Part shown: piece by piece, positions 6,201-31,100 of the stretch
Position numbering within the stretch: the stretch's first letter is position 1
How the letters are laid out: each line of letters starts with the position of its first letter
Source of the DNA: Bugula neritina
Lineage: Eukaryota; Animalia; Bryozoa
Length of the DNA: 64,000 bases
Assembly: GCA_964035545.1 (NCBI GenBank)
Contig: OZ037770.1
Coordinates: 5,466,729-5,530,728 of the forward strand
Direction of reading: 5' to 3'
Notes under the pieces: generated by a model
Told to the model about the DNA's origin: nothing
The model's database searches: none
The model's input: only the letters and a program-made list of their open reading frames with translations
Translations under genes and position numbers: made by a program

Positions 6201-6919
6201 GGATAAGCTTAAACCTGAACTCCTGACCATGACTCATTCAAAAGGAGCAACGATCAGTATAAAGAGAAAATGAAAGAAAATCATGACAAAAATCCTAAAG
6301 TGCGCCCTCTTTTGCCAGTAAATAAAGGAGACAATGTGATGGTGAGAGATATGCAAAGAGAAGGCTATGCTGCCTCTTCTTCAGATAATATTACTCGTCG
6401 AACAAATGTCATGACTGACACTGGACCTTTAATACGTAACAGAGCTGATATAACTAATATCCCAACACGATGTTCTGAGCGAACCAGAAAAGTGCCACGC
6501 TACTTAACAGATTTTGATTGTACATAATTTATTATCCACGCCTGTAATATAAGTTGCACTTGATTTAATTACTGTTGTCAAACCTTTTCTTTTGTTTGTT
6601 TTTTTTTGGTTGTTGTAGCCTGAAACTAAAGAGGGGATGTTGTAATATTTACACAGTTTATGTAAACTTGGAGTTACCTTTTCTTGATGTTTTAGCTGAT
6701 CAATTATTATTCTGTTTTTGAAAAAGTTAGTCACTTCCTGTTTGACAAACTGTAGTGCTTGATTAAAATAAACTGAAGATTAAAACTAATCAACTAATAA
6801 TTGCTAGATAAATAGACATCTAAAGAATAAAACTCGAATTATCCTAGCGAAGTTTTTCTAGCATAGTAAATAAGACTCTCTTGATTGCACACCAACCCGC
6901 AATTCTGGAAATTATAACA
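3262..6919 (+). mobile_element. Ty3/gypsy LTR retrotransposon (K02A2.6-like), internally deleted and frameshifted
   Basis: 5' LTR stub 3262-3333 is near-identical to the 3' LTR start at 6638 (TGTTGTAATATTTACACAG). PPT aaagagggga 6628-6637; LTR ends ATTATAACA at 6919. Gag zinc knuckle (CAKCNQFN.WAGVC), RT (DANSGFWQ, HMDD), RNase H (TTDASN), integrase (H-H..WWP..C-C, SDNG, AERG) in gypsy order. Confidence 0.93.
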
Positions 6920-8408: not shown

Positions 8409-10389
8409 TTAGGGTTTTTCCTCTTCATCCAACCCATCAAAGCCAGGAAACAGGTAAAGTCTTTTACGGGGAGGAAGAGTCTTCCAGATTACAACCAAAT
8501 TTCTGCTTCTCTCTGAATCTTCATCTGCATACAGTTTCTTCACTAATTTAGTCTGTACCTGTAGAGTAAGAAATGACTAGTATGATTGTGTACCAATGTA
8601 CTACCAGATGAGATAAATATTTACAACTCTAAGCTGCTGGAATATACCATCGTATTTGTATCAAATCTAAGCAGCAAAATCTTGAGAGTTGTCTGCTACA
8701 GTTAACAATATAAGATATATCATTGCAGTGAGACTGAGACAGTCCGTAAACCTTCACAACAGGCTGATAGAAAAATCTCAATCAAAAAATATTAATAATA
8801 AACAGCTGAGATAAAAGAAATATTTTTGTATGAAACCAGAACTCAGCAAAACTATCATTCTAGACTTACCTGCATGAAAATGGTGTAGAGATCACGGTGA
8901 CAGGCATGTTTGTAGATTGAAGATACGAGAGCTCTAACCATAGGAGATCCATACTCAGGATGTCTCTTTGATGCTATAATAAAATTAAATGCAGTCAAAA
9001 TTATGGTGTAATGAAAGCAAGCTCAGTATTTTTAAAAGTGTTTGTTTGATATACTTTTTAAAGACAAGTTTACAAGATTGGATTAAGAAGAGACAATTTC
9101 CTAAATAACTGCAACTGTGCACATGTAAAACTAAACAATCACTATTTAGTATACGTACAGCAGACGTTGCTCTTTAGAACAAGAAGATTATCAACATCCA
9201 GTCTGGTCCTACGCTCTTCTATTCTAGGTGCTGGTGGTAAGACAGGTTTGATGGGTCTTATTACACTGGGTGTTTCAGGATATACAATATCATCATCAGA
9301 TTCAGAATGTGTAGAAGAGACAGCTTCAGTTTCTTCTTCTTGAGCTGCTGCGAGACCAGATCCGTTTGGATTCACCTCAATGTTTGCTGCAAGAAAATAT
9401 TTTTTAAGCTTGCATCTTGAGCAAAAAAGAAATTCAATCAATACAGAGAGCGCTTTTCAAAGATCTTTGTTCTACTTCCACAACTCGACTAAAAATAAAA
9501 ATTTTCTATAAAACGCTGTAATTACCTCCACTGCAAGCTTCTAGGATGACAACTGTAGGTTTACGCTTTAGACTTAGAGGAGCGAGTAAATCATACAAGT
9601 CTGTAAGATTGACCTTCTCAAGGTCAGTTCCGTAGATGCAGTTATCTTCTTCACCGTGACTCATGACAACCAGTATTTGACAGCCCAAGCCGTTGTTTCT
9701 TACATTTTTTATCTCGGACTTCACAGCAGACAGCATTTCCTACATTATTTTTATAAAATGTTATTATATCTCTAAAAATTGCTGCATTTTCTATATAATC
9801 CTGGCCCATCAGCCATTTATAGCATAACTGCAACTTGACAATATTAGGAGGTTGCTAAATCTTGTTTCAATAGTAATAGGTATTTTCAGTTGAAAAGCTA
9901 ATACGTCAGCCAAGTTGAGCTGTGTAAGTAATATTAACCATAAAGGTAGGCCTAAATGAGAGCATTCACTTAAATCAGTATGACTATTGATAACTATAAA
10001 TTTTGACTCACAAGCAAGTATGCCAAAATGTGCACCCATTTTAACAAATCTTAGGTAGTATTAGAACAGTGTGTAAGTTGAGCAAATACTGAAAAAAAAG
10101 CTTGACCATAAAAGTTTGAATACAGTTTCACATAAAAAGCATTTTAACTTCTTTAAAGAAATAGTATGCTACCGTGTATATAGTTCACTACTATTGCTGC
10201 CATTCTAAAATGTTATACCTCTGCTGTCAGGTCTGTGTGTGTCTCAACATCAAACTTGAGAGATTTCAACATGGCAGACATGTTCTCAACATCAGCATTT
10301 GAACCTTCCCTGCATAAGTCTGGTCTTTCGACAAAATTTTTGTTGTTTATGATCAGAGCTTTTCCTCTGTTTCTGGTCATATTGAACAC
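8409..10389 (-). CDS. Caspase (peptidase C14A) domain over five exons: p20, acidic linker, p10
   Basis: VFNMTRNRGKALIINNKNF..REGSNADVENM; VMSHG; KPTVVILEACSG; p10 DNLLVLKS..SKRHPEYGSPMVRAL..RDLYTIF..TLPPRKRLYLFPG matches the caspase consensus. Confidence 0.93.
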
Positions 10390-13300
10390 CTGGAGGCAAG
10401 AATATTTAGAATACCAGGTACAGTGGTGACATGAAAGTCTAATAAATAAATATTGGGAGCCAATTTGGCCGAGGCTCGCAATTATCAAATTATATTACGA
10501 TCAAGTTTACTTTAGAAAGGAAGCAAAGATTCTACATTCAGGTCTTCTTTATTACTAAGTTGAAAAAATAAAGGAAGAATTACAAGCGTAGAGCCACTCG
10601 AAATGTTTTACACGCGGGTGACATGCGAGAAATCCCGTTTTGCTCAAAAATTGGACGATGAGAGGGGGATTTTAATGTGTCTAGCATGCTGAGTGAGAAA
10701 TGCGAGAAGCTCGTGCGTGTTTGATCTAATTGGCTTATTATTATTTAGCGTGAAAAATTTTTTATTCCAATTCGAGTTTTAGCTTTTAGCAAACTGAAGT
10801 AAAACAGTTTTATATAATTCGCATTTCCGCTTTGATAATATCTGTCGAACTTTCATCGCATTGGTAAAAACTGACAGCTGCGTTCAGAAATCAGACAGTT
10901 GTGACGTCACAGAGGTCAACGCTTGGCCTCGAAAACGCATTCAAAATGGCGTTTCGACGGTAGTGTGGCAGCCCCATAAATTCACTTTGCCGATGACATA
11001 GTTTTATAAACAAACGTGTAAAGGCAAGCAGTAAGGTTTAACGCTAACATTGTTAGCTAATAAATTTTTGCACTCACAACACACGCACTGTGCGTGGCAT
11101 GTCTATACGGGCACGGGTAAGGGTCTTCCCGCACGTGACGCGCATATAAAAGGCTTCGTATGGCCCTACGCTAACACTATAGTGTATTGATTGTCCAAAC
11201 CAAAATGTCTAAAGACGGCCGATAAACAATGTAATAACCTTGACAGTATTTGAAAAGAGTTGTTTAATCCTGGGGTTGTTGGTGGGCTTTAAGTTGAGTT
11301 TTATCAACTTCATATCCTTGTCTTTTTCTTCACCAGTGTGTAAAACTTCATCCTCATCAGAGAGATCACTTAGATCAACATCGTCTACAGCAACAAGATT
11401 TTATTGTCAGTATTTGATAAACGTAGGAAATTTGTTCAGTCCATACAAATAAACATTATATTTTGCCGGAGATAGCTTTGCTAAACTTGTCAAAGAAATT
11501 TACATGGTCAGAATTTCTATACTGTTTATACAGCTGTTTGAAATTAGTCAACAGCTTTTGCAAATTTTTTTTCTTTCAAACTTACCTCTATCCAGAAAAA
11601 CAAAGCTAAGAACTAACTATACTGTAAAAGTTTACCAGTTAAGTTCTTCTGCTCTATTCTTCGTAGTTTGAGCTCTGCCAACAGTGTCTCCAACATACTA
11701 ATTTCTGCTTTTGACAACGCTTCACCTGAATAAAACTGATTAGATCAATTACCTTGACTATTACTTTGAATAAAACTATAACTAGATATGTTTTACTACC
11801 AAATCTCAATATTGACACAACTAAAAAATATGACGAATATAAAAAAAATGTTTTCAATTGAATAGTTCAAACTGATGATATATTCGGAAACACGATTAGG
11901 CAATGTTTGGTGTTTAATCTAGTTATGATGAATTCAAATTAGGAGTTCGTAACTTAAACTAACTACTCAAACTGACCTTGTGTACTTTCAACGTTTGAAA
12001 ATGCATTAATGTTCAATAAAAAAAGAAAGTTTCAGTAAAAATATTCATGAATTAACTTACATGGGTAGATTAAAGCACTGGGCACTTCCTCGTTGTTACA
12101 CAATGTTGTTGAAGATCCACTACATTTCTTTACATCTGGTGATGGGTTGCTTAAGGAGCGAAGACACCAATTAGGACGAATGATTTTTTCAGGGCAAGAA
12201 ACCCCAAGCGTGATGCAGTGAGCACAGAAGCAGGCAGTGACTGGTCGACTAGCAGTCCAAGTTTCCATCACATGTCTGAGGATGTTGTTGTTGGTTGAAA
12301 TAAGTTTCTCCCACATCCTCGAAATGTGAGCAGCATCAGATGACACATAGAGTAAGACTCTTCTTGCTTTGCAGTCATGTATCAGCTGTGTGTATATTTG
12401 ATCTTGGTAAACATTAACCCCATTTTTCTTTACCCTTCTCACAGCAAACTCCTCTGGAAACAGCTCTAGCAAACCCACAGTCATTTGGTGGTAGACGTGC
12501 TGTGGTAATGCCAGACCATTAAATTGTGTCTCAGCAGCAAGTAACAGGTCTTTAGATGATGTGTAGGAAGTGTTATATAGCTCCTTGGCAAACTGCGGAA
12601 CAATGTAGTATGATTCTTTAGCATCATTTTCCAAACTACCATATAGCAAGCGGAATGTTCTGAGCAATGAAACAGCAATTTCAACATCACCAGGACTCTT
12701 GAAGGAAGTTTCGTCAGCAATCAAATATGTTAAAAGAAGTTGCATCATCATGCCACTAGTCTTGAAGCAATTAACAGATTTTTCAAAGTCTTGCTTTTCA
12801 ATCCTGACTCCTTCTATGGAATGATATGATTTGAACTGATCAACTCGATTGTGCCAAATGTTTGGGTCATGGTGATACAAAACACACAACAGTTTGGTTA
12901 CTTCTGTGATCTTGTGAAATACGTATGGCCTGAGTGTATCAATGTTCTTGTACCACAATACTTTGCCACAGTCATGCATGTATGTGAGAATAGTATCTAG
13001 CTGGCTTGGCTTCAGTTCAAAGCCGTCTTTTCTTAACACAAGCAGAATAAACCAAAAGGAGCAAAATGCTCCGGGTAAAGACAAAACCTTTTCATTCACT
13101 TTTTCCCATATCAAAGGCAAAGGCTTAACAAAATGCTGACTGCTCTCTAGAAGGGAGCTCTTTATCAAGTCGTACTCAGCATAGTCGTCTTCCTTTCCGA
13201 TCTGATATATATCTTCACTGGCAAAAACCTTTCCATTCAATGAATTGAAATGCTGAATTTTCACAAATTCCCCATCTGAGCTTTTCTCTTCATCAAGAAT

Positions 13301-16300
13301 TTCTTTGCACAGTTTCTCAGATTCTTGAAGAAAGTCATCTTTTAGCTGTTGATACTTCTCACTTTGAAACTTATCTTTGTGTGTGAAAACAAGTTTAGGT
13401 GGGCCAAGAGATGGATGAGCGAGATAGAGGTGAGACATGAAATCAAAGGCCAACTTTCTCACAGCCTCTCTGTTTGTAGATGCTTTCGAAATCTGATCAT
13501 ACTGCTCCATGTTGACTACAATGACTGGTACACAATTCTGTCTCAGTGTCAAATGGTATGTGATATGGTAGACCTCCTGGCCTCCCATATCAATGAGACG
13601 AAGAGTTGTACCATCCACCTCCACCTCTTCCACATTGAACACTTTTGTGGTCTCATCATACTCTGCATTCGAACTTCTCTTAGTCAGAACTCTCTTCCTG
13701 CCAGTGCTTTGTAATGTTTTGATCAGACTGGTTTTACCTGCCATGGTGTTCCCTAACACCGCTATTGTAGCAAATGGCAAGTTTCTACCAGTGCCCTTGG
13801 CCAAATCTGTGTAGTATTGTCGCACAGCATCTAATCCTCTCTGACAAATTTCTAGTGGAGGAGATGTAAGAGCATTGCATTTGTTTATATTCAGTGTATG
13901 GAGATGTGTTAGCTGTAGTATCTCCGGGTTCAAGGATGTCATGAATATGTTGAAGAAAAGATTCAGTGTGTGCAGATTACTCAATATGCACACTGAATAT
14001 GGTAGACTGGTGAAGTTATTTTCATTTATGTCTAGTGTCTGTAGCTCCTGTAGACTCTGTATTCTAATAAAATATTATATTTCTATTACCATCATAAACT
14101 AGAGGTAGTTGGTATACAATAATTAGGCAAGGTAGTATTGTGTGATAGTGACTATAGTAACCTCATATGAAACACTTTTAACTATCTAGCAATCAGCCTC
14201 ATGGTAGCTACAGAAAACAAGTACATATAAGCCACAACCATCATATTATATATACTGTATGTAAATTGGTGTTGTGTGTTGAGAGTAGAGAAAACGTAGA
14301 ATAAGTATTGGAAGACTAGAAAAAGATATTAGAGGATGCCGGCCTATAAGTCAGCAGGTATAAACCTGTGTACCTATCACCAGAAAAAGCAGCGATGACA
14401 TCAGAATCATGGAATACGATAGATTTGAACATTCCACTTTGCCTCAAAAAACCATATTCAAATACCTGGAGAATACAATTCACCAGGAAGCAGAATCTAG
14501 AGGTACAGGTGCGCATTGGCAACACCTAGGATAAATGGAGAGAACTGACTGAGGTAATATGTAACAATAAAGGAGAAATGAAGAGAGCTGACAATAAAGT
14601 TTGAAAGAAACTAAAGTCGCTTTTTCACAAGACAGTAATATGAGCAGTTCTACTGTATGGAGTGTAAATGTAATGTTACGAAATAGGATGTTTACTGAAA
14701 TTATAACTCGTAGTACAATCACACACAATCACAATATCATCAACCTCAAATTAGCCCAACCACTAGCTGCCAGTAGTCAACCTAATGCTTCTTTAATTAC
14801 TATCCCAAAACAGTAGCTACGCATGTAGAATGATTCATAGTCAGCAGCTATGCTTGCATTAGCTGTGATGTCACACGATGCTTGTTTACTTCAGCCCACT
14901 TCTTGAAACAGTAAGATCCTACCCCAAAATAGTAAATTGTAAAATCATACCTCTTACAACACAATAATGTTTATCAAATGGATTAGTATATAAGACAAAA
15001 CCATTTTTAGTAGTTGCAATATTGTTAGAGTCATGCTGTCAGTTTGGACAGCATTAAGTTTATGTAAGACTACCGAAGAGTAGCATTATTTGAAAGACTG
15101 TGCAAAGCCACAGCATCAACATAACAGTAGACTAGGAGAGAGAGAAAAGAGGTAATGAGCATCTATTTACAATTATATATCGTTATTACATTTTTATGTT
15201 ATAAAGTTTTTAATAATATGGGCTGTAGTTGCATGCTATGTTGAATCATTATTTCATGCTGCTATCTACAATTTATGATATACATTGCTAGTGCTTTTAC
15301 ATACATACTTATTATATTACGTACATTTTGTTTGCCTTATGCCTTATGTTGTATCATTATTATTCTAGTTTTTACGGTCCGCATTTGGTCAGTATTTGGT
15401 GACTCAAATAAACTCTGATCACGTCTAAAACCCTCCCTATTCCTAGTCAGGCTGTATAAGCTAGAGTGTCACTCTAAAGCAAGAGCCATAGCAAAGAGTG
15501 TCATTCTATAGTAAACATGGCCATTGACCGATTACCTTGCTGAAAGATTTAGCATAGCGTAGGTGAGAACCAGTCTTAAAGATGACAAAACCAGCGAGAG
15601 AATTAGGCAGTATTTACACATATATATAGAAGAGAGATGACATGAGAAGAGTACATGTGATGAGAGTTAGAGCAAAGAGAAATCGAGATGCTCATAGCGT
15701 AGTCAGCAGGACGCAATCAGGAAAAATAACCAATTCTGTTTTCTCAATGAAGAAGACCCTCAGAATGAAGTTATGTAGAAAAGTTTATTTAGGCTAGGCC
15801 TCTGGCAGCCACCCACTACCCAAGCAAGACATAAAGGCAATAGGTGAGGGTACTGCCATACACTGCGTTTCCATGACTTCGCATAATGCGAATGAATGCC
15901 CCATACGGATTATTTGTGGTTTGTGGTTTGCATTAACTTATAGTTGCGGTTTCATTCGATGTAACTGTTTCCATTAGCCGAATGAAAAAATCCATTCGCA
16001 ATAATTCCCATATATGCATAGTATCTCATTGTTTCATCAAAATTTTGGAAGGAAATGAGAAGAGACACTAATAATTTATATAAATGAAATAAAAAAACCA
16101 TAAGGATCATTTTGATAGGCATCATGCCTATGGAAATGCTTTTGTTATGTCTTAAAATTAGCTTGGGACATTGCTATTATGGAAAACAATGAGGCGTCCT
16201 CAAACTTTTTCACAGCACTGTACCTGACCACAAAATCTATTGTTAACCTAAGCCAGTCAGTAGGAGTGTACACATCAGATAGTCAACAAGTCTCTTAGCC

Positions 16301-19300
16301 CACAACTCTTTAGTCATTAGTAATGAAAGGCAAAGTCTGACATATCTCAACATAACTGTATGTTACCATACTTTGTACCACATATAATATGATGGGTATA
16401 ATTGATTTTGTCATTTTATCTTATATACAGTGTTGATGTAATAATATGACTACATTATATAATTCATTTATATATGTCTTTTTTGTACCTGCAGGTTTAA
16501 ATAATATAATATACATGCTAGTAACACTATAATAGAGGGTAATGAATTTGTAAGTAAATATCATTATAGTCATTACAGAATACATAAAAACAATATTATT
16601 ACTCTGTGTGCCTGCATTCTGTTACTGCAATTTTTTATGTTATAGTTTATCATAGATCATGTGACCCTGAGTATTAAACTTTATGTTTTATTCAACAGAG
16701 TACTTGTTTCATGTCATCAATAAAGAGAATCAGTGTTGTCAAACCTTTGCATTGACTTGTATTGAATACTAGCACAATGTAGTCTACTGTATTATAATAA
16801 TATATACTGTATATATATTATGCTGCTTGTGCATTCAAACAAGGAATAAAGTTTAGGCAGCAATGCAAATTTCAGTGCAGAGCTAATAAGTCAAGACAGC
16901 TAATGAGGATTCAACAGTAAATAAATACTAATAAACTATAAATGGCTGCTTTATTATAAATTATGAAGGTTTTCATATATATTTTACGACAAATCGTAGA
17001 ACTATGTTATTTTCAAGATGTGAGAGACTATAATACACATGTAACTTCAAAAAAACTCCAGATTATATACCTCTATATTTTTAACCTAGTAATATATAAT
17101 GGGGTACTAATTAAAATTATTTAGCATGCATAAATATGTGAGTTACTGTATTTTTAAACAACACAAAAGCTGTGAAACACAAACCTCTCAGGTAGAGTAG
17201 ATAATCTACAGTCCTTCATACACAACTCTTTAAGTGATGTGAGTGATGACACAACTTCTGGTACTGTGTAGAGAGGATTATCTCCTATGTCTAGTTTCTC
17301 TAACTGAGTCAGCTGACACAGACTATAATATAAAGTGTGTGATATATGTAGTCTAATGCATAAGGATAATATATATACTGTATACATTTCTTGTGTATTC
17401 AAACCAGGTAAAAAATTCAAGTAATGCACTTACTGTTACAAGACACCACAAGAGGTCGTTTCATTATTAAATACAAAACGTTTTACTACAGAATGGTATA
17501 TAATACCATAGCTTACAACTGTGTTACTTCAAGGATATAACAAACTATTACATGCCTTTGAAAAATTCACTTTATATTTTTAACCACAGCAATATATAAT
17601 ATAATATACTTTAATATTACTTTTTAAGCATATAAATATATGAATGTCTCAGTTTTTGAAACAAGGAAAGCATACCATGACACTAGTACACTTACAAAAC
17701 TACTAAATAGAATTTAGAACTCCAATCATTTTTCAACAATAAAGCATTAAAATTTCACATACACTATAAAAGCCACCCAGAAAAAAAGGAACTGAATACA
17801 GAACAATCAGCCTAAAGAGTTTTGTTGTAACCAAGTTATTTTGAAGATGTGAATTATTGAATGCTAGAAACAATACAAAATCTGTGAAACACAAACCTCT
17901 GAGGTAGAGTAGATAATCTACAGCCTCCCATATTCAACTCTTCAAGTGATGTGAGTGATGACACAACTTCTGGTACTGTGTTGAGAGGATTATATCCTAC
18001 GTCTAGTCTCTCTAACTGAGTCAGCTGACACAGACTGTAATATAAAGTGTGTGATACTTGTAGTCTACTGCATAAGGATAATATATATTATATACTGTAT
18101 ACATCTCTTGTGTATTCAAACCAAGTAAAACATGCAAGAAACACACTTATTGTTGCATAGTACAGCGGAGAGTTTTTGTAGTTATATTGTAGGTGAGGAG
18201 AGAAAGCTTCATTATGCAAAGTTAGCTATTAGCTTATAGTACATGGGGCCCCATTCTACACGCTAAGTAAGTTAATCTGATGACTAAATTGTAATGTAAT
18301 ATATTTGTAGTTTATGACTTAAAGTAGCCTTTTCTATACTACTATAAACTGTGAATTACTTCAGTTTTCAGCTACATAAAACATGATTTATTTAATGCTA
18401 TCAACTAGCAGTATACAGGCAGCTTTAAACCCTCTAATTACTACAACCAGCTTACTTGGTATAGTTACAATGTTGCACATGTCCTTATTTTTATGTATAT
18501 TATATTGTATAAATATGTTATCAGCAAAAGGATGCTACAGCTTCAGCATCTATTATAGGTTATTATTTAATAAACAACTAAACTCATTTAACATTCACAC
18601 AGCTATTGTAATAGACACTCACTTGTCCAGACTTGCCCTGTCAGTCAGGTGAGAAACAAGTAGACGCAGGGCTTTACCAGCAATCTCTCCAATGTTACTT
18701 GGAAGTTTCCCTTCCAGTTTCAGATCTATGATATCATAACTCCCAACTTCACGTTTTACCTCAGCAGTAGTATATAATTTGGTATTAGCCCACCATACAT
18801 CTGACCAGCTCACAGGAGGCTGTCCAGAATGTCTGAACCAGATTTTCATATTCTCTGTAACATAATACAGCAATAGTGTGATTACTACACAGTGCTAGCA
18901 GGTGGTGTCTATCATTCTGACACCTGTCATCTACTGTTTGAATATATTTATTATATGGTGGATGTTAATATTCATATCTATAACTAAATTACACATAATT
19001 ATTTTATTGAGTAGCTTTAGACTCTTCATAATTAGTCATTTTGTGTATAATTTCCAGAGCAGTGTTGATTACTTTGCAATAAGACAACTCTAACCAAGCT
19101 GCTTTCATCATCTTACAATTTTTCAAAGCATTAAGTTGATTGTTGACATAAACAAGTATAGGATGTAGTGATGATGTATTAATCAGTATCTATTAAATTG
19201 TATTGACATAACATCTACATTCACTTATCTGTTACCTTTCATACTTCAAGGTTTACATACATGTACTAAAGAGTTGGACATACAAACATTACATACAGAT

Positions 19301-19657: not shown

Positions 19658-21304
19658 CTAAAACATATATTAAATATAAAGTAAAATAATATGATTACTC
19701 ATCATATTCATTATATTCTTAGAGTACATTAATATTTCTAAATATAATGAATATTTGGCTAAACAATACACCAGATCATCAAAAGTTTCACAACTTCCTG
19801 AAATAGGTGTAGGCAGCTATTAAATTTAAAGCAGTAGAATATAATTACTTGCTATTTTCACCCTTTGTAAAGTACAAGGATATTCTCGAAAAAGAGTCCA
19901 GATCTGACTAAGCAATACACCAGGTGAACAAATTTGAATCAGAACATTTGACAACTCTCAAATACTTATAGATTTTATAACATATATATATACGTACATA
20001 TAGTCATTACTAAAAAAAGGATTCCTTTGCTTCAAATGCTTGAAAGTTGAATAAAATGTTACTTAAGCGGACTAATGACATTAATTTTTCATTTGACTTG
20101 ACACAGTTTGGGGTTTGAGAAAAACTCATCTCAAGGGACTTCTTAAAATATTTATTTTCACGCAAGCAAGATAGTTATAATAATGTAACTGCAGAATCAA
20201 AAACTGCATTCGACATATCCCCAGGTGCAGAAGTATTACAAAATGTTGTACTTCTGAACAAAGCTATATCAAACATTATCACCCAGCAATTTACAAACTC
20301 CGATATAAATGGACCAAACCTTACAACATGACTATAAAACAGTCTAAGGAGATGTGGAGAATTATTAAAAAGTGGAAATTCCACAATTCATGACTAACTC
20401 TACAAGATTACTGACCTCTACTAGCTGCAGTGCTATTGAAACATGTGGCCTAGTAACTTATGTTCACTTCTTTCAAATTAAGTATTTTGCATTTATTCGA
20501 GCTCAATAAAACATACAATATATAGCTGCACTCTTCATTTTTCAAACAGGTAGTAGCACTTTCTGTTTAGTCAAGCTAGCATAGCAAATAATGTGTAATG
20601 ATACCAAACATGAATTAGTTACTAGAAACTCTGTTGTAGAGAACCAATAGCGTGGAATTTAAGATCATCACTCATACTGGTTATGATAATAAAATAGCTA
20701 CAGAAACTATCACAGTTGGTCTGCCATTCTTCCATTCTGAACCAACTATAAAAGATGATACCCTTCAGCATACCTATGCACTGCTATACCTAATTTGTAT
20801 CATTAGATATTAACAAGACTACATACACACAGACTTGTAGTCTGTATCTCCTACTCTGTAGTACTGATTAGAGACTTACATAGTTTTACTATTTCTACTC
20901 TTAATATATATTTTCTGCTGAGAAGAGTCGATTACTAGAAGAGGGTTTAGAGTGATGACAGTAAGACAGTGGGTGAAGATTCCTACACAACTACCAGAAT
21001 ACCTGCGTTTTTCAGTCACCTGAACCAGTGTAAGCTAGACTATTAGTGTAAGGGTGGAATATATAAACAAAAAACAGTAACAATTCTAATGGCTGTGCCA
21101 GGTTATATATATGTGACCAATTAATCCATTTACGCAAATAGATTCTCTTAAATCAAATACATATAAGATATATTTTGATTGAACAGGTTGATCTTGCATT
21201 CTTTTCATTAGATTTAGGATAGACAAGAATTCAAAAACTAGATGCAATACATGTTATGTTCTACACTTTAGATGTAAACAAGATAAGATTTCACATATTA
21301 CATG

Positions 21305-21412
21305 GTAACAAGATAGTACTCTGTACATAACTATATGTAAACAAGGTAGTACTCTGTACAGAACTAGATGTAAACAAGGTAGTACTCTGCACATAACTAG
21401 ATGTAAACAAGG
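21305..21412. repeat. 33-bp minisatellite (~3 copies)
   Basis: AACAAGGTAGTACTCTGYACAKAACTAKATGTA repeated. Confidence 0.85.
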
Positions 21413-24400
21413 TTATATTTTATAATTGATCAAAGAACAAAAAAGTTTATTTTCAGAAGTATTTCATCATCTCTTCAAATTTTCAGGTTTTTCACTATCC
21501 TCATTGCAAAGAAAAACTTTACTTACTATTTTCCGCTAATGTGAGGCAACTTTGGTTGCAAGAGATACAACAATGTTCTTTGAAACGCTAACAAATGAGA
21601 TGAGTAGGTAATTGGAAAGGGCCAGATAGAATATATTAAAAAACTGAAACTAACTAACTAAAAGTAAAAAGAACTGCAAAATAGAATAGTTAAAATCATT
21701 ACAACTTATACAAATTTTCAAAAAGTCATAGATGGATTTAACAAGTTTTTTCTCTTGACTATCATCACAAAACACCAACAAAACTGAGAACAAATTTTAA
21801 GCTAAATCTATTTGCTCTTCATATTTTTTCCAAATTATTGTATGTTATTCAAAAAATATATATAAAACAATAAATTACTTCATCCTAATTGAGACATGCA
21901 ATACAACCATAACTTATCTAAAAATAAGTCGAGCCAGGTAGGAACACCACATGCACAACAACAACTAACACAGTGCAATAACTAAAACTAAACTAAGCAC
22001 CAGCGAGGCAACTTTCTTAGCTGTATAAAATATGTTTAAGCATTTTGCTTCACTTAAAGACCAAAATGAAACCTGACATATGCTAGAGTGTATCTAAAAT
22101 AAAACAATTTGTAATGACCGTAATAAATATGTTTGATTGTTATATAATTTAATTCCTATTCAACACTATGTAATTTTACATGGGCAAGCCGATGGTCATG
22201 TTTATGAGGTATATTAGAGTGAAGACTTTGAAGAAAATGTAAAAACCTGTGGGCTATTATTGCTCCATTGCAAGAAGCACCAATATGTTAAAGAACAAAC
22301 AGTAATCACATTAATAACATGTGGTCTTTGCTATGCTCTTGGTTGTTACCAAAATGATCTCAAATTAATTTAAAAAAACTGTTTCAAAAGATTACAACAT
22401 TGTTATCATACTGATAATTAATTTTTATTCTAATAATATTCAGAAGTAATATTGTTGGAGGTATCATAAATATGACTGAGCATGCTTGGACTACCTCGTT
22501 TAACTAGCTATTGAAGACTGCTATATTATAGCCAACGCAGTCCATACCTAACAGTTGAGCTGACAAGTTGCAGATTTAGATATCATGCAGATTATTGGAT
22601 GTTTATAATAAAGTGCAGTTTGTGTTGAAAACGATACAAAGGTATGTTTTTCTGTTTGTGCTGTCAAACATTAAAGCTATACATATAGAGTCATATTATA
22701 TCATGTTATTGAGGCTTCTGCAATTGTTAAATGTTATGATTTTTTGAACCAAAGAATGCTGTTGTGTGATCTTTTGTTATGTTATGCTGTTGGATGTGGA
22801 TTAAAATGTGATTTCAGATCAGCTGTTTAGTTAGATATAATGAAGAATATATAAAATAATAATTGGTAAACAGAAAATAACCTTTACAAGTTCTACAAAT
22901 AGAGAGCTGCTAAGACTGGAGCCAGCAAGGTATAAGATAATATAAAAAGGCAGTCCATACAAATTGCTAAAATAGACAACTATTTTATTCACTATTAGCA
23001 TTAGTGTTTTACTGCCATGAAAAAAATTTCTGTCTATTGTTTATGATAATTAGAGTGAGAACAAACCGGAAAGATATCAAATTAAAAATTAAAGAGGTAA
23101 ACAAAGTGCTTTATCTATGACACTTGTTCAGTTAATTATAACAATGCTATAACACATGTCATGGTATAACTATCAAGCATGATATATTTACCAATAACTG
23201 TTGGCACTGCAATGGTACCAATGACTATGTAATGTAACAGATTTGAAAATCTATCCATGCCTTAGTTGTTTTTATGTGAATTCTTTAACTGTTCTATTTA
23301 CATGAACGCCTTAATTAGTCTCATTGCATAGTTTTCTTTGTTCAAATTTCGTTTGTTTTCTTTTGAGCTCCATTTCATTTGAGCATCGAACATCTCAAGT
23401 TTGATTCAACTTTAGACACTTGAAACATTGCAAAAATTTAGATTGGAAAGTCTTGGAAGTTTGGAGAGTTTAAATTTATGAGTGTAGAAAGGCGATCTTT
23501 TCTAGTATTGTATCAATCTGTAATCGCAGCTCGCCAACTGCTCTTCTACTTGGAGTTATTGATACTGATTAGGCAAACATAACCACAGGTTCTCTTATTA
23601 AGGACACCCAATGAGAAAATCAATTTGACCCAAAATCTGTCCTTTCTCTGACTACATAAAACTTTATGTAGTCAGAGAAAGCCAATAAAAGCCCACAAGT
23701 TCATCAAACGGTTTGAGTTTATTTTGGGACCATAGCTAATGCTCTACCAAAAGAAGACACAGGAAAGTGACAGGAGGAGGACCGGAGATGAAGCCACTTA
23801 CTATGGAGGCTCTAGCCCTGGGTTTCTAAAAAGTTCAGCAGTGCAATAGGCACCACCTGGAAACAACTTTCATTTCAAGACATCAGGATTCAATAAAGAT
23901 GGTGATGTGGTACAGTTCAGTTCGCAGTTTTTGAATGTGGCCATGTGGATTTCTGCCAACTGCAATCCCAGATCTAACGCCAACATGAAAAAAGTCTAGC
24001 CTGTGCTAAAGAAGCATGGGCAAAACTCTTGCCGCTGGGTGAGAAGCCCCTCACAGATCTCGGAAGCCGCAAAATCTCACTGAAGCTCTGGCTTGGCCAT
24101 TCACCAAGCGGCTAGCAAGGTTACCCGGCGAATTTGTGGAAAAAAATGTTCTTCCTACGATCAAATGTTCCCCATATTGCCCTCCAAACTTCAGAAATTT
24201 CCAAGGTTGTCAAGGTTCAACAGAGTCTTCTTTTAAGACTCAAAACATGTTTCTCCCAGAGACTGATTGCTTCAAAAACAGCTAATTATACAGAAGCGAC
24301 TACTTCCTGCCTAGGAAAGTTGCTGGTAAAAATGCCACTTTTTTTGACACCGGGTGCTCCACTAAACTGCTGAGTTACGTCTCTTCAACACTCTTGGTGC

Positions 24401-25169: not shown

Positions 25170-28100
25170 TGTAGTGGAAATCAAAGTACGCACTAACACC
25201 ACATATTTGTTTTTGTTGTAAGTTGTTTTGCCCCGCCACATTTTTTTGTATGTTTAATTAATTAAATATGTGAGTCGAAGCTCGGCCAAATTCGGAGCCA
25301 AAGGTACGATTTCGGAAGGGTCTGTACGATTTTGGGCAGATCCTTTTCGACTTCGGCCGGCGGATCACCTAACTTCGGCCGAGTTTCAGACCCCCATAGT
25401 GCCGAAAAATGTTTGCTGTATATAAAGGCGAGCATTTTCAGTGCTAATCAGTATTACACTGGAGCTCGCAGAAGAAGGAACTAACAACCAATAAAGATTA
25501 TTGAATGCAAACTACAAATTTTATTCAAGAAATGACAACATTGGCATGCAGACTACGTAGTCTATTTTATACAAACCCGCAAAATCATAAAATTGGTAGC
25601 AGCGATGGGATAAAATAGATAAGTACGACAAGCAGCCATTTGAGAAGAAGGAAGAAAAAACGATGGGAGATGAAGGAGAGGAAGAGATGGTGGGAGAGAG
25701 AGAAGAGGATGATCGTCTCACTATAGAAACTCGCATCACGGCCTTCCGAGAAGTTAGCAGGGCCGGGCATGCAGTACTTGGAGACAGGTATCGCCTCAGG
25801 CGCCCGATTTTTGGAGGCGACGGAGACATCGAACAATTCATTAAGAAGTTTAAAGAGGTAGCCACCCTCGCCGAATGGCCGGCACAGGTGCGCCTTCTTC
25901 ATCTCCGTACTTGCTGAACAGGTCAAGCAAAGAGTTATGCTCTCGGGCATGATGTCAGGCACATTTTTCAGGCCTTCAGGTCTCGCTTCGGGCTGACCGC
26001 CTGAGCCGCCAGGGATCATCTACGAACCATACGCAGAGATAGGAAAACCTCATTTCAAGATCATGCAGATGCTATTGAGGCACTAGCACAGGTAGCCCAT
26101 AGCAATGACGAACCCGAAGCACAAAGAAGCGCTGTGTACGAGGCCTTCTTTCATACCATCAACAACCCCTGGTTGCAACGCTATTACTTAGCAGCGAAGG
26201 TTACTACTATCAAGGAAGCCCTGGCTTTGGGCAAGGCCTACTACCAAGTGGACGAACCTCAGTGCGCGGATTTCACCACCAATCAGGTTGAGGAACAGCT
26301 GAAGGTCCTCAAGCCGGATCCACCAAGCTCACAGAATGTGGCAGCCGCTACCGCTACACCATCGCCTGACCAGCTGACCATGTTGATGGACATGGTGAAA
26401 GGCTTACAGGCTGACATGAAGCAGATGCAACGAGAACAGGCTGATAGACGGACGCCCAGACCTCGGGGCAAACCAATCAGCACTTCGCACCTCACCTGTT
26501 GGGGATGTGGTGCCCGGGGACATGTGCGAAGGCAATGCTCCCAAGAGAGAAGGGTGTCTTTAAACACCCAAGGCTCGCGGAAACTTCCGCCAACCGTGGG
26601 CCCCAAGCCATCCCCATCCGGGAGGAAATAACCAAAAGGACCTTTTCCAGGCCTGCTGATGTCAAGTGGCAGGCACCTCGGAGACATCAGAGACTGCCAA
26701 GTCTACGCGATTCTCTAGCTCAGCCACTGAAGACCCGGGTGGAGCCTAAAGATACAGGATGGCAGGCACCTCTGAGATCTCGGAAACCGCAAGGTGTGCC
26801 CGATCCTCCGGCCTGGCCACTCCAAAATTGGTTCGCAAGGTTGCCTGAAGAGACTGTGGAAAAAGATTCAGCTTACTCGCAAGAGTATCCTAAGTTACCC
26901 TCCCAGTCTCAGAAAACCCCCGTTGTCTGTAAGACAAAGAGGAGGCCCGCTGTAAGGGCCCAAGAAGTGTCTCCCCCAGAGACTGACCGACCCAGGAGCC
27001 CCCAGCCGTACGAAAGCAGCTACTTCCTATCTAGAAAAAGTTCGTGTAAAGCTACCACTTTCCTGCTGGGGACAGGGTGCACTACAAGCCTGCTAAGTCG
27101 GCGTCTCTTCGACACACTCGGTGCCCGAGAGCAGGCAAGCCTCGAGCTGTACATGGGAGCACATGGTACGTTGGCGGACGGATCGTTTATTCTTTTCTAC
27201 GACATTATTAGGTTACCTTGACGCGTTCGTGATCAAGCAATTGACAGATGTCATTTCTGGAGAAACACCAGTGTTACATGGATTCCCAGAAGTCGGTGGT
27301 GGTGATGGCTGGGAAAGAGCTCGCCTATGTGGACAAGTTTGGTAGGCCCTTGGTGGGCGGAGTCCAGGTAGTACAGGCCTGCAGGGTTCCAGGAAGATCC
27401 CAAGCTACTCTCCGATGTAGAGTCAACTGCAAGGGGATTGCTGCCCAGGAGTGGTGAAGGGAACACACGGAGCAATTCAACTGGCGAACAGCCTTAATTG
27501 GCTAGACTGTCGGAGGGAGCTCCTCGTGCAGTGCATCAACCCCTTCACGGAACCAGTCCAATTGTTGGCTGGGGCACTGGTGGGAAAGTACCACTCCATC
27601 CAAGAAGCTGATGTAAGGCCGGCACTGGACACAGTGGCCGACACTCAGGGAGACTCTCCTCGTGCCAGTCGAGGAGCAGTCCTAAAACACATGGCTAACC
27701 TTTACGGTGGAGCATGTGGCAACTGTACTAGTAGTGCCAAACGCCAGGTACTGACTGGCTCAACTACTGATGTAGTACAGGGGAATTGGGCTGATTAAGG
27801 TTATCTCTCATGAGATACCCCTGGCAGCCGGCACCACCCCTATCCGACAGCCGACCCGACGGAGAAGGAGGTGAGCCGACAGGTGCAGGCTCTTCTCGAC
27901 TGGGACTTGATTGAGCCTGCTCACGGTGCGTGGAGCTCTCCCGTAGTCCTGGTCAAGAAGAAGGATGGTAGCTGGAGACACTGTGTCAGCTACCGCAGAC
28001 TCAACAGCGTCACCATCCAGGATGCCTACCCTCTCCCACAAATAGATGAGTCTCTGGATGCCCTCGCAAGTAGCAAGTACTTTAGTACTTTGGATCTGCT

Positions 28101-31100
28101 TAGCGGGTACTGGCATGTACCTCTCAGTTCTGATGCCCAGGACAAAGCAGCATTCATTACTCACGATGGGCTCTGAAAATGGAAGGTACCGTCATTTGGA
28201 CTTACGTTTGCCCCGGCAACCTTCCAACGGCTCATGGAGCAGGTGCTCAGTGGGTTGCACTGAAAGACCCTCCTCATCTATCTAGACGACATCAGTGTTA
28301 TCTCCCCAGACTTTATTACTCATGCCAGTCGTCTGCCAGAGGTCTTCGACCGCCTCCGGGCAGCTGGACAGAAGTTGAAGCCCTCCAAGTGCGCGCTCCT
28401 TCAACAGGAAGTCACGTACCTGGGCCATATGGTTGGCCGCGATGGGGTTGCCACCGATCTGGAGAAGTTACAAGCTGTGAAAGAGTGGGCTGTCCCCCGG
28501 GACCTCTCCAAATTGCGGGCATTCCAGGGCCTAGTAGGGTACTACAGACAGTACATACCTGGGTTTGCAGGGGTGGCTCAGCCTTTAAATCGGCTAACCA
28601 CCAAGGGGGTGCGGTGGCAGTGGACACAGGGGGAGCAGCAGACATTCGATCACCTCAAACAACGGCTAGTGGAGGCGCCGATTCTGGTGGATCCTGATCC
28701 AGCCGAAGAGTACACCCTGGACACAGACGCCAGCGACCACAACGTGGAAGCTGTTCTGTCTCAAGTCCAGGGTGGAAGTGAGGTGGTTGTTGCTTATTAC
28801 AGAAAGACTCTTGTAGCCGCCGCCGAAAAGAACTACTGCACTACTAGGAAGGAACTTCTAGCAGTAGTCAGGGCAGTCAAGCACTTCCTGCCATATCTGT
28901 ATGGGAGAACGTTCAGATTACGAACAGACCATGCATCCCTGATATGGCTGTGCAAGCGTGCAGAGCCCTCGAGTCAGGTAGCTCCCAGGCTAGAGATTCT
29001 TGCTGAGTTCTCCTACCGGATAGAGCACCGGGCCGGTAAGAAACACGAGAACGCCGACGGCATGAGTCGCCAGCCGGTAGAAGACAGCAAGCAATGCCTG
29101 CACATTGAGAAGCGTGATGGGGGCCTCGCTTGCCTTGACCTCAAGGCACAGTTGGGAGAAGGCAACGTCTATCGTTGGGAGCACGGCCATCTTCGGCCCG
29201 AAACTCACTCTTATGCTGTCTAGTCACTTCGCGCCAACCTCACGCTGTACCAGAATATCAAAGAGCTGTGTCGACTACAATAGACATTATCCGAAACAGC
29301 CGCTGATATCTTCAGGGCAAAGAAGGACGGTCGGCGACCCACGGAAGAGCAACAGCGACATAAGGACGCAAAGTTCAGGTTGCTCTGTCACCGCTGGAAT
29401 TCTCTTCAGATCCGTGCAGACGGCCTCCTGACAACAACACTTGCAGCAGACAACCGACAACAGGAGAGAGATCGTGTCGTATGTCTACGCGCTCTCCATC
29501 GAGAACTCATCTGGGATACCCATAAACAAGCCTACGCTGGGGCCAGTCAGGTTATCAGATGCCTGCAGATGCAGTGGTATTGGCCTGGGATGACCGGGAT
29601 GTCCGACTAAAAATCCGACAATGCGAGATCTGTCAAGCCAACAAACACGGGCGCCTCACCGAGACCACAGGCCGGCGCCGGCTGTACGCCGACTGGCCTT
29701 GGCAGATCGTAGCCTTGGACCTTGTGAGACCAATGCCCACAACAGATAGAGGAAACGCCTAGATTTTGGTTTTGACAGACCACTTCACACGGTGGGCGGA
29801 TGCCTTGGCTATCCCCGATGCAGCGGCACCCACGGTAGCCCAGGTCCCGGACCAACACGTGTTCTGTTACTTTGGCCTACAGGAACAGATACACACCAAT
29901 CAGGGCGCCCAATTCTAATCAGAACTAATGAAAGACCTCTGCGAAGTATAGGAGGTGAATCAAAGCCGGACCACCCCGTACCACCCTCAAGGAAACGGGG
30001 TGATAGAAAGAAACAATCTAATGCTGGGTGATGTTCTTCAGAGTCTCTTGTTGGGGAGGAGTCAAGAAGAGCGGGACATCATGTTACCACAAATTATGCG
30101 AGCTTATCGGAGTACCTCTCACTCTAGTACACATGAAATACCAAATCTGCTGATGTTGGGTCGCGAAACTAAAGTTCCGGGACATCTCACTTACCACGTT
30201 CCAGCTCCCGAATTTCCCGTACATGAGTATGTAGGAAAGTTGGTCGAGACCATGAGGAAAGCTTGTGAAGCCCTGCGAAAGAAACAGTGGGCAGTGCGAA
30301 CAGAAGATTTTGAGGAGCTTCCCTTATACAAAGAAGGGGACTGGGTGTGGATGGTCAGCTACCGTAGGCGTCGCGGACAGTCGGCCAAATTGCAGCCAAA
30401 GTTCGTCGTACCCTACTGCGTAGAGGAGGTTTTGCTCAACCACACATACCGTGTGAAGCGCTCAGGACAAACCGCTGTCCAAAACGAGCAGCGGCTAAAA
30501 CCTTACTACAAAAGCCCAGAAGCAGCAAGACAAGCACCCCCACTGCTGGAGCCCCCCCCGCCAACCCGTCTCTCGGGGGAGGGTAGCTCGGCCTAGAAAC
30601 CAGGAGATCTTTGTCCGCATTTCTGAAGAGCTTAATGACACACAGCGGCCACCACCCCAGCCACAGCTAGAGGATCGGCCAATCCCGGGCTTGACCTCGG
30701 TGGCCCTATGACAGAGGACCCCACACCACCACCAGAGAACCCAGGGCCTATCGCACCACCAGAAAACCTAAAAAAAGCACCCCCAATACAAAACACTCCA
30801 GACCGGCCAGATACTTCAGCCGCTAACACCTTAGAAAAAAGAAAAAGGGATAGAAGACCCCCAAAATACTGGGCTGACTACCACATTGGAGGTCTAACCA
30901 ACCCCAAAATATCGAATTGTTTGCTCCAAACAAATATAAATTCAGTTCACAGCCTTAACCTAGGCAATAAATACCTCTAAAACTAGAGACACTCGAAACC
31001 GAAATTCGGAGACAAACCGATCTCCGGAGTTACCCAACTTAACTGACCAATTGACCGATTACGTGACTGGCGATTCCGCGAATTTGGAATTTAAAATTCA

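Follow-up and report, generated by a model that had tools for sequence, protein, structure and literature searches.

A germline family of predicted LRR-Roc-COR-caspase genes in Bugula neritina with diversifying selection on interchangeable LRR cassette exons

The LRR-ROCO genes of the brown algae Ectocarpus and Saccharina, which carry shuffled LRR exons (Zambounis et al. 2012, PMC3341825; Teng et al. 2024, PMC11378527), are the closest described counterparts of the bryozoan locus reported here. In both, LRRs are followed by Roc and, as predicted in Bugula, by COR, and the loci are expanded and lie in clusters. Both also have phase-2 symmetric LRR exons of one length, present in different numbers in clustered paralogues, with about four positively selected positions in each repeat on what is predicted to be the concave face. 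For the brown algae, LRR exons have also been reported to be alternatively spliced (PMC11378527). The initial annotation of this DNA had already drawn the parallel to LRR exon shuffling in Ectocarpus ROCO genes, and the two papers describe it as stated there. The differences are that the algal cassette has 72 nt and codes for one LRR, while the Bugula cassette has 138 nt and codes for two alternating repeats (N-type and C-type), that the host is an animal, and that a predicted caspase follows COR. Convergence of the exon structure with that of brown algae is likely, and the Bugula family would be a convergent twin of the algal system. The nearest animal reports concern ROCO fused to TIR or Death domains in Aplysia and CARD/death-domain ROCO proteins in Trichoplax; in our search of the literature, no paper turned up that describes a ROCO-caspase or LRR cassette family in bryozoans or other invertebrates.

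In the variable lymphocyte receptors (VLRs) of lampreys and hagfish, diversity arises by somatic assembly into an incomplete gene. VLRs resemble the Bugula cassettes in the hypervariable residues of the LxxLxLxxN strand and in gene-conversion-like exchange of cassettes, and the PDB sequence matches of the cassette include a VLR (2o6q, E 2.3e-10). However, the Bugula cassettes appear to be spliced exons of complete germline genes, and their exchange is evolutionary. Plant NLRs and animal NLRs and TLRs form large clustered families with omega above 1 at solvent-exposed LRR strand residues. Like the Bugula proteins, NLRs join an NTPase switch to an LRR sensor, but their switch is a STAND NB-ARC or NACHT ATPase instead of a Roc-COR GTPase; the Bugula genes further differ from NLRs and TLRs in a caspase effector predicted in the same chain and in repeats split into interchangeable exons. 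A further comparison is with human MFHAS1/MASL1 and the SHOC2/LRRD1-type LRRs, the Bugula cassette being a pair of 23-residue SHOC2/LRRD1-type repeats; MFHAS1 is a single-copy gene without a caspase or a cassette array. Arthropod Dscam1 also has tandem, look-alike, frame-compatible exons that code for variable recognition surfaces. Dscam exons encode Ig half-domains and are spliced in a mutually exclusive manner, whereas the Bugula cassettes appear to be used all in series.

The window analysed is a stretch of 64,000 nt of the B. neritina genome, and positions below refer to it. On the strength of its reading frames and of domain matches searched for exon by exon, its cassette exons, named A and B, would form the short LRR sensor arm of an LRR-Roc-COR-caspase gene on the minus strand. 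The parts of this gene, in the direction of transcription, are as follows.

18623..18849, minus strand: exon preceding the cassettes, candidate first coding exon, with an open frame and the end AA/GTGAGT in phase 2.
17897..18034, minus strand: cassette exon B, 138 nt, phase 2-2, two 23-residue LRRs (LCQLTQLERLDVGYNPLNTVPEVVSSLTSLEELNMGGCRLSTLPQ).
17323..17896, minus strand: intron between B and A, 574 nt.
17185..17322, minus strand: cassette exon A, 138 nt, phase 2-2, two LRRs (LCQLTQLEKLDIGDNPLYTVPEVVSSLTSLKELCMKDCRLSTLPE).
12032..14063, minus strand: large exon with the last LRRs, Roc and COR, acceptor AG at 14064-14065, phase 2 start.
9506..10488, minus strand: two caspase (Peptidase_C14) exon pieces, within ORFs 10213-10488 and 9506-9736.

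The candidate first exon is conserved at 90-93% in the sister genes P1, P2 and P4, and its 5' end and start codon are predicted. The Roc-COR exon keeps its frame open over 676 aa; position 12032 is the stop of this frame, and a splice donor may precede it. The exon matches Pfam Roc (PF08477, 31.3 bits, cut-off 27), with the P-loop GNTMAGKTS in the translation. COR-A gives a weak match (17.8 bits, cut-off 35.3), and several homologues at 36-40% identity have a precomputed match to PF16095. Both caspase pieces score above the cut-off of 21.4 bits for PF00656 (41.8 and 28.4 bits), and their translations contain SHG and EACSGG, the catalytic His and Cys motifs of the predicted caspase. The dN/dS of the Roc-COR exon against sister genes is 0.26-0.33, which shows purifying selection on a gene that appears complete. 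Pseudogene decay was considered and is rejected on account of the open frames and the conserved scaffold.

Both cassette exons are open, are bordered by AG at the 5' side and GT at the 3' side, and consist of 1 nt, 45 codons and 2 nt. Their translations show the LxxLxLxxN/CxL motif with a 23-residue period, as in typical SHOC2/LRRD1-like LRRs. Exon B reaches the Pfam LRR_4 cut-off of 27 bits (29.2 bits) and exon A falls slightly below it (25.2 bits, E 1.8e-5); the best PDB matches of exon A are Leptospira LIC11098 (3.7e-26) and SHOC-2 (9e-23). Splice sites, reading frames and conservation are what mark these sequences as probable cassette exons.

A recount confirmed the comparison of the two exons in the initial annotation: there are 12 nt differences, spread over 9 codons, and every one of the nine codons changes the residue (A/B: K/R, I/V, D/Y, Y/N, K/E, C/N, K/G, D/G, E/Q), with no synonymous codon among them. 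Seven of the nine lie inside the two LxxLxLxxN/C motifs (hypergeometric P 0.014) and six at x positions (P 0.0016). One possible explanation is chance, that is, two old duplicate exons that happen to differ only at nonsynonymous sites in the absence of selection. With only nine codons (Nei-Gojobori Sd 1.0, Nd 11.0), the probability of seeing no synonymous difference under neutrality is 0.03-0.08, and the lack of synonymous-only codons is marginal for this pair alone. The all-nonsynonymous appearance arises in part because the scaffold codons have unusually low synonymous divergence. However, the clustering at x positions speaks against chance, and the same positions are hypervariable in 87 unique sister exons, above synonymous and intron rates, which makes chance very improbable.

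The similarity between A and B spans 221 nt at 92%, or 314 nt at 87%. The description of their flanks as near-identical is borne out close to the exons (-123..-1 and +1..+52, 14.9% diverged) and fails for the remaining intron, where identity is about 60%. The 574-nt intron is instead 95% identical to the matching sister-gene introns at C6:5545007 and C6:6253941, which fixes the positional correspondence of the cassettes: exon B corresponds to cassette 4 of P1 and cassette 2 of P2, and exon A to cassette 5 of P1 and cassette 3 of P2. The view of A and B as each other's recent duplicates is not supported: each has its own counterpart in the sister genes, and the two exons are old members of the array.

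A genome search with exon A returned 351 candidate copies and a search with the Roc-COR exon 103 candidates. The 40 best exon A matches, which were the ones scored (91-93% identity), are all located on contig C6, at 2.5 to 6.25 Mb. Every one of the 96 extracted cassettes has AG/GT borders, and 93 are intact, open and 138 nt long. By sequence, the family appears to comprise at least 351 two-LRR cassette exons in roughly 100 clustered LRR-Roc-COR-caspase genes.

The check proposed by the initial annotation, a larger exon set with site-wise dN/dS, was carried out on 90 distinct sister cassettes with our own maximum-likelihood implementation of a codon model. The only codons with an amino-acid entropy above 2 bits are 11, 13, 14, 34, 36, 37 and 39, which are x5, x7 and x8 of repeat 1 and x5, x7, x8 and x10 of repeat 2. 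Exactly these seven codons are positive in the site-by-site test after Bonferroni correction, with omega of 4-13 on the strand face, and the identical seven are recovered with an exon-only tree (omega 5.3). In the pooled model omega is 7.9 at the seven codons versus about 0.56-0.57 elsewhere (2dlnL 399); the codon model assumes a single tree, which gene conversion violates, so its P values are nominal. Nonsynonymous change at the seven codons runs at 3.07 times the rate of the entire, mostly intronic repeat unit.

Pairwise pN/pS counts, which need no tree, agree with the codon model. Across 45 independent nearest pairs, pN at the hypervariable codons exceeds pS 3.1-5.0-fold and the intron divergence 2.3-5.5-fold, and pN/pS at the remaining codons is 0.3-0.5. 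Positional counterparts whose introns are about 95% identical have exons that are 8-13% different (P 0.002 and 3e-5); of their 14 hypervariable codons, 13 are not the same. The introns of the cassette block diverge by 0.046-0.052 and the Roc-COR synonymous sites of the same gene pairs by 0.10-0.13, so the cassette introns may be homogenised and the neutral rate perhaps understated; even against the higher Roc-COR baseline, the hypervariable codons, with a divergence of about 50%, change several-fold faster. These results demonstrate diversifying selection on the LRR strand face. In LRR geometry, the exposed x positions of the strand motif make up the concave face, and from general structural knowledge the variable residues would line the concave ligand-binding face. 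The original reading of the A/B differences as marks of diversifying selection holds in part: four of the nine fall on the seven selected codons, and codons 9 and 31, at x2/x3, have omega of only about 1-1.5.

The number of cassettes is 2 in this gene and 5, 3, 5 and 18 in its sister genes. Two further features of the window bear on the origin of this variation.

17846..18095, minus strand: interval within which the exon B unit recombined unequally, 250 nt, delimited by informative columns.
17206..17362, minus strand: gene-conversion patch over exon A, from -40 to +116 relative to the exon start, perhaps to +160.

In its upstream part, which ends at -61 relative to the start of exon B, this unit is of the first-cassette type of the sister genes (38/39 informative columns); downstream, from +188, it is of the penultimate-cassette type (6/6). 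The unit is a chimera left after in-frame loss of interior cassettes, and the suggestion that cassettes are added and lost in frame is confirmed by this chimera and by the range of 2 to 18. No near-exact twin (at most one mismatch) of the two hypervariable words of exon B was found in the genome, so a donor for exon B cannot be named.

Over exon A, 17 private changes fall within the 157 nt of the patch, whereas the remaining 1736 nt of the block hold 46 (P 6e-6); a stretch of 38 nt of intron accounts for seven of the 17 (P 9e-5). Thirteen are identical to the cassettes at C6:6090699 or C6:6101155, and an exact 29-nt word is common to the patch and C6:6090793. The patch over exon A, about 160 nt long, is of a cassette type that is found 0.6 Mb away, which supports the suggestion that cassettes are swapped; the sister genes may be the converted ones instead. 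A scan of metagenome contigs with the hypervariable word of exon A gave no match, in a collection that may lack this genome and near ones.

The conversion patch raises the question of whether the seven codons are a mutation or conversion hot spot without selection on the protein. Cassette pairs with intron divergence under 1-3% do differ block-wise in their exons, at synonymous sites too, synonymous divergence is higher in the hypervariable codons than in the others (0.16 versus 0.09), and the patch extends 40 nt into the intron. However, the fast codons are interleaved with the near-invariant codons 10, 12, 15, 33, 35 and 38, which no tract-level process can separate, and pN/pS within the hypervariable codons is still 1.9-2.7. 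Conversion supplies variants yet leaves the site pattern unexplained, and we consider a hot spot alone improbable.

Conversion between many LRR cassettes with variable concave-face residues also recalls the somatic assembly of lamprey VLRs, in which individual cells would complete an unfinished germline gene by copying cassettes into it. The similarity ends with this resemblance: the cassettes are ordinary AG/GT spliced exons within complete open genes, the observed conversions are fixed in the germline assembly, and no incomplete acceptor gene with flanking exon-less donor cassettes is present. Such assembly is hardly credible here.

Together, our results suggest, with a probability of about 0.8, that the cassette family, diversification at the seven codons and germline reassortment explain the locus best as a whole. 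We propose a model in which the LRR scaffold is kept nearly constant while the seven codons are under strong diversifying selection. New cassette combinations would originate in the germline by three routes. Unequal recombination between cassette units would change cassette number, and since every cassette is phase 2-2, gain and loss would stay in frame; this gene has retained just two cassettes, with the join at exon B. Blocks of hypervariable codons would move from gene to gene by short-tract conversion between their cassettes, as in the patch of exon A, and point mutation would be the third source of variants. That the variety is made in the germline follows from the chimeric junction, the conversion patch and the site-wise selection. 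The proteins would then act as sensors of non-self or danger, with ligand binding by the LRRs passed through the Roc-COR switch to the caspase.

A different source of variety would be regulated skipping or choice of symmetric cassettes, giving several receptor isoforms per gene. All cassettes are phase 2-2, so any subset is in frame, and alternative LRR-exon transcripts have been reported for Ectocarpus (PMC11378527). In addition, a 139-nt frameshifted cassette (C6:5042276) lies inside an otherwise intact array of 18, whose open frame needs this cassette to be skipped. On the other hand, the splice sites are all canonical and alike, with no mark of regulation, and two cassettes allow at most four isoforms in this gene; such a splicing toolkit is possible but doubtful. 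It is tempting to speculate further that a germline library of several hundred exons, reassorted by conversion among about 100 receptors, combines with regulated exon skipping to give each individual its own surfaces for allorecognition or immunity, which we regard as unlikely.

Bryozoans are colonial and fuse with or reject their neighbours, and we know of no bryozoan recognition genes. Individual-specific recognition surfaces for allorecognition or immunity would follow if the reading by skipping and reassortment were true. In the preferred germline reading, a single protein uniting a fast-evolving LRR surface with a GTPase switch and a caspase would be a new design of animal non-self or danger sensor. 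The locus adds two concrete events, an in-frame cassette loss with its junction placed within 250 nt and a cassette-sized conversion patch with the donor type identified, which together show how variety arises.

The best named database relative is a protein from another bryozoan, Watersipora subatra, and is annotated "MFHAS1 homolog" (33% identity). Besides exons A and B, the only trace of an additional cassette found in this gene is an old, decayed unit.

16777..16846, minus strand: pre-acceptor intron remnant of a cassette unit, exon absent.

This remnant has 77% identity to the stretches directly upstream of exons A and B and is shared with the sister genes P1 and P2.

Exons A and B, the two cassette exons of the LRR-Roc-COR-caspase gene, each comprise 1 nt, 45 codons and 2 nt (phase 2-2) and encode two 23-residue leucine-rich repeats (LRRs), the first with the usual Asn of LxxLxLxxN and the second with Cys instead. 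Their initial annotation as look-alike 138-nt phase 2-2 exons is borne out by the AG/GT borders and the reading frame.

Parts of the gene, in gene order (cassettes B then A follow the upstream exon)
ends 18623, (-), exon upstream of the cassettes; donor AA/GTGAGT, phase 2
17897-18034, (-), exon B; 138 nt, AG before, GTTTGT after
17185-17322, (-), exon A; 138 nt, AG before, GTTTGT after
3.1 kb, (-), intron from cassette A to the large exon
starts 14063, (-), large exon; AG directly before, phase 2, open for 676 aa

The large exon encodes three further LRRs and a Roc domain (31.3 bits against a cut-off of 27) and matches COR-A weakly; the caspase exons, which come after it, match PF00656 (41.8 and 28.4 bits) with SHG and EACSGG motifs. 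No further cassette of the A/B type was found within the window. Against three sister genes the Roc-COR exon has a dN/dS of 0.26-0.33, indicating purifying selection, and thus the ROCO-caspase gene looks functional.

A and B differ by 12 nt spread over 9 codons, and translation shows that all nine change the amino acid; seven of the nine fall in the strand motifs (P 0.014) and six at x positions (P 0.0016), as first read. The flanks, described as near-identical, are so close to the exons but not farther into the intron: similarity spans 221 nt at 92% or 314 nt at 87%, with 14.9% substitutions in the 175 proximal intron bases and ~60% identity beyond. By itself the pair is weak evidence, as had been cautioned, since neutrality would leave the pair with no synonymous-only codon at a probability of 0.03-0.08. 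The Nei-Gojobori counts are 1.0 synonymous and 11.0 nonsynonymous differences over 33.3 and 101.7 sites. The flank divergence predicts ~5 synonymous differences and 0 to 1 is observed (P 0.007-0.04), so the all-nonsynonymous appearance has two causes: a few fast-changing codons and unusually slow silent sites in the scaffold.

The genome holds 351 candidate copies matching exon A, the best 40 of which match at 91-93% identity and sit without exception on contig C6 (2.5-6.25 Mb), and 103 candidates for the Roc-COR exon. Exon A resembles cassettes of other genes (93%) more than it resembles exon B (91.3%). The 96 cassettes sampled from 30 loci comprise 93 intact 138-nt exons with AG/GT borders, one that lacks 9 nt in frame and two with frameshifts. 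Among C6:4857556 and C6:4040029, one cassette measures 129 nt, the in-frame deletion, and another 140 nt with stop codons.

The proposal of diversifying selection holds in this larger exon set. Codons 11, 13, 14, 34, 36, 37 and 39 have an amino-acid entropy above 2 bits, and no other codon exceeds 1.2 bits. Among 45 nearest cassette pairs that are phylogenetically independent, these seven codons have a pN of 0.31, against a pS of 0.10 and an intron divergence of 0.13, while pN/pS is 0.3-0.5 at the remaining 38; in pairs less than 10% diverged, seven-codon pN is 5.0 times pS and 5.5 times intron divergence. An MG94-type codon model, fitted by maximum likelihood on branch lengths fixed from an intron-plus-exon tree, gave a synonymous rate of 0.39 of the whole-unit rate and nonsynonymous rates of 3.07 for the seven codons and 0.22 for the others, corresponding to omega values of 7.9 and 0.57 (2dlnL 399 relative to omega = 1 and 254 relative to the unit rate). 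Per-site tests with Bonferroni correction were positive at exactly these codons (omega 4-13), and an exon-only tree returned the same seven with an omega of 5.3, the choice of tree being conservative for these sites. Repeat 1 contributes x5, x7 and x8 to this set and repeat 2 contributes x5, x7, x8 and x10; the x2 and x3 positions (codons 8, 9, 31 and 32) are not among the selected sites. Four of the nine A/B differences lie at selected codons (14, 34, 36 and 37), and the other five (9, 12, 18, 31 and 45) have an omega of about 1.0-1.8. Gene conversion alone cannot account for the alternation of fast codons with invariant ones.

Introns of the sister genes P1 (C6:5.54 Mb) and P2 (C6:6.25 Mb) match the one between B and A at 95% identity, and the three genes share a collinear 1.9-kb block, which together establish the positional correspondence of the cassettes: the counterparts of B are the fourth cassette of P1 and the second of P2, and those of A are the fifth of P1 and the third of P2. 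By this alignment, A and B are old members of the array. Positional counterparts differ by 4.6-5.2% in introns and 8-13% in exons (P 0.002 and 3e-5), and the three genes disagree at 13 of 14 hypervariable codons. When all cassette pairs are considered, the divergence of hypervariable codons is already close to its plateau (~0.40 per nt) by 3-6% intron divergence. In the gene pairs that gave 4.6-5.2% for introns, synonymous sites of the Roc-COR exon have diverged by 0.10-0.13, twice the intron figure, so the cassette-region introns may have been homogenised between genes; even against this higher baseline the hypervariable codons are several-fold faster. The regions compared were 16221-18128 (cassette block) and 12032-14063 (Roc-COR exon).

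In-frame gain and loss of cassettes, also suggested initially, finds support in copy number and in the chimeric exon B unit. Here 2 cassettes lie between the upstream exon and the Roc-COR exon; the same two exons enclose 5 in P1, 3 in P2, 5 in sister gene P4 and 18 in another close sister. The 5' flank of the exon B unit, up to -61, is of the sister first-cassette type at 38 of 39 informative columns, and its 3' flank, from +188, is of the penultimate-cassette type at 6 of 6. The unit is thus a fusion of first and penultimate cassettes, unequal recombination at some point within 17846-18095 having taken out the interior cassettes in frame. The 18-cassette gene (C6:5031343-5057483, L051-L054) is a higher-order repeat of 4-5 cassettes, with 12.6 kb from its last cassette to the Roc-COR exon.

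Swapping of cassettes, a further proposal, is borne out at exon A. From -40 to +116 of the exon start, 17 of 157 nt are private to this gene, against 46 of 1736 nt in the rest of the block (clustering P 6e-6). Seven of the 17 fall within 38 intron bases (P 9e-5), outside the reach of protein-level selection. Thirteen agree with cassettes some 0.6 Mb distant, at C6:6090699 or C6:6101155, and a 29-nt word coding ELCMKDCRLS has an identical copy at C6:6090793. The cluster is a gene-conversion patch of cassette size, although the sister genes might be the converted ones. In family pairs with 1% intron divergence, exon differences, silent ones included, come in blocks, which is the same conversion signature.

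The cassette variety is germline; it arises by unequal recombination, short-tract conversion and point mutation, and selection for new residues at the seven positions filters it. A somatic process like that of VLRs is not supported, since complete genes carry these cassettes as ordinary exons. Phase symmetry would permit exon skipping, and a hint of it comes from one cassette of the 18-cassette array (C6:5042276), which is 139 nt and frameshifted within an otherwise intact array.

Among described systems the LRR-ROCO family of brown algae comes closest: its 72-nt phase-2 exons carry a single LRR, its loci are clustered, four of its concave-face sites are under selection and its transcripts include alternative forms (PMC3341825, PMC11378527). 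The Bugula family differs in its animal host, its two-repeat cassette, the fused caspase and its mappable exchange events. No description of it was found in the literature on bryozoan or invertebrate ROCO-caspase or LRR cassette families. The best named protein relative comes from the bryozoan Watersipora subatra. Dozens of Roc-COR relatives (P0001-P0043, 36-77% identity), none a counterpart of this gene, lie on JGI, ENA and Logan contigs of 3-22 kb, probably bryozoan DNA within marine metagenomes.

Within the intron from A to the Roc-COR exon, ~1.6 kb (14599-16221) has no counterpart in P1, reflecting either an insertion here or a deletion there; its portion 15511-15860 is common to P2 and a third sister gene, P3. 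Upstream of the gene, at 21299-21424, three copies spaced 33 nt apart and 82-88% alike form a short tandem repeat. An LTR-retrotransposon-like stretch lies on each side of the gene, one at 1000-6300 (+), with reverse transcriptase and integrase, and the other at 25500-31000 (+), with reverse transcriptase, RNase H and integrase pieces across several frames and 45-55% GC against a background of 30-35%.
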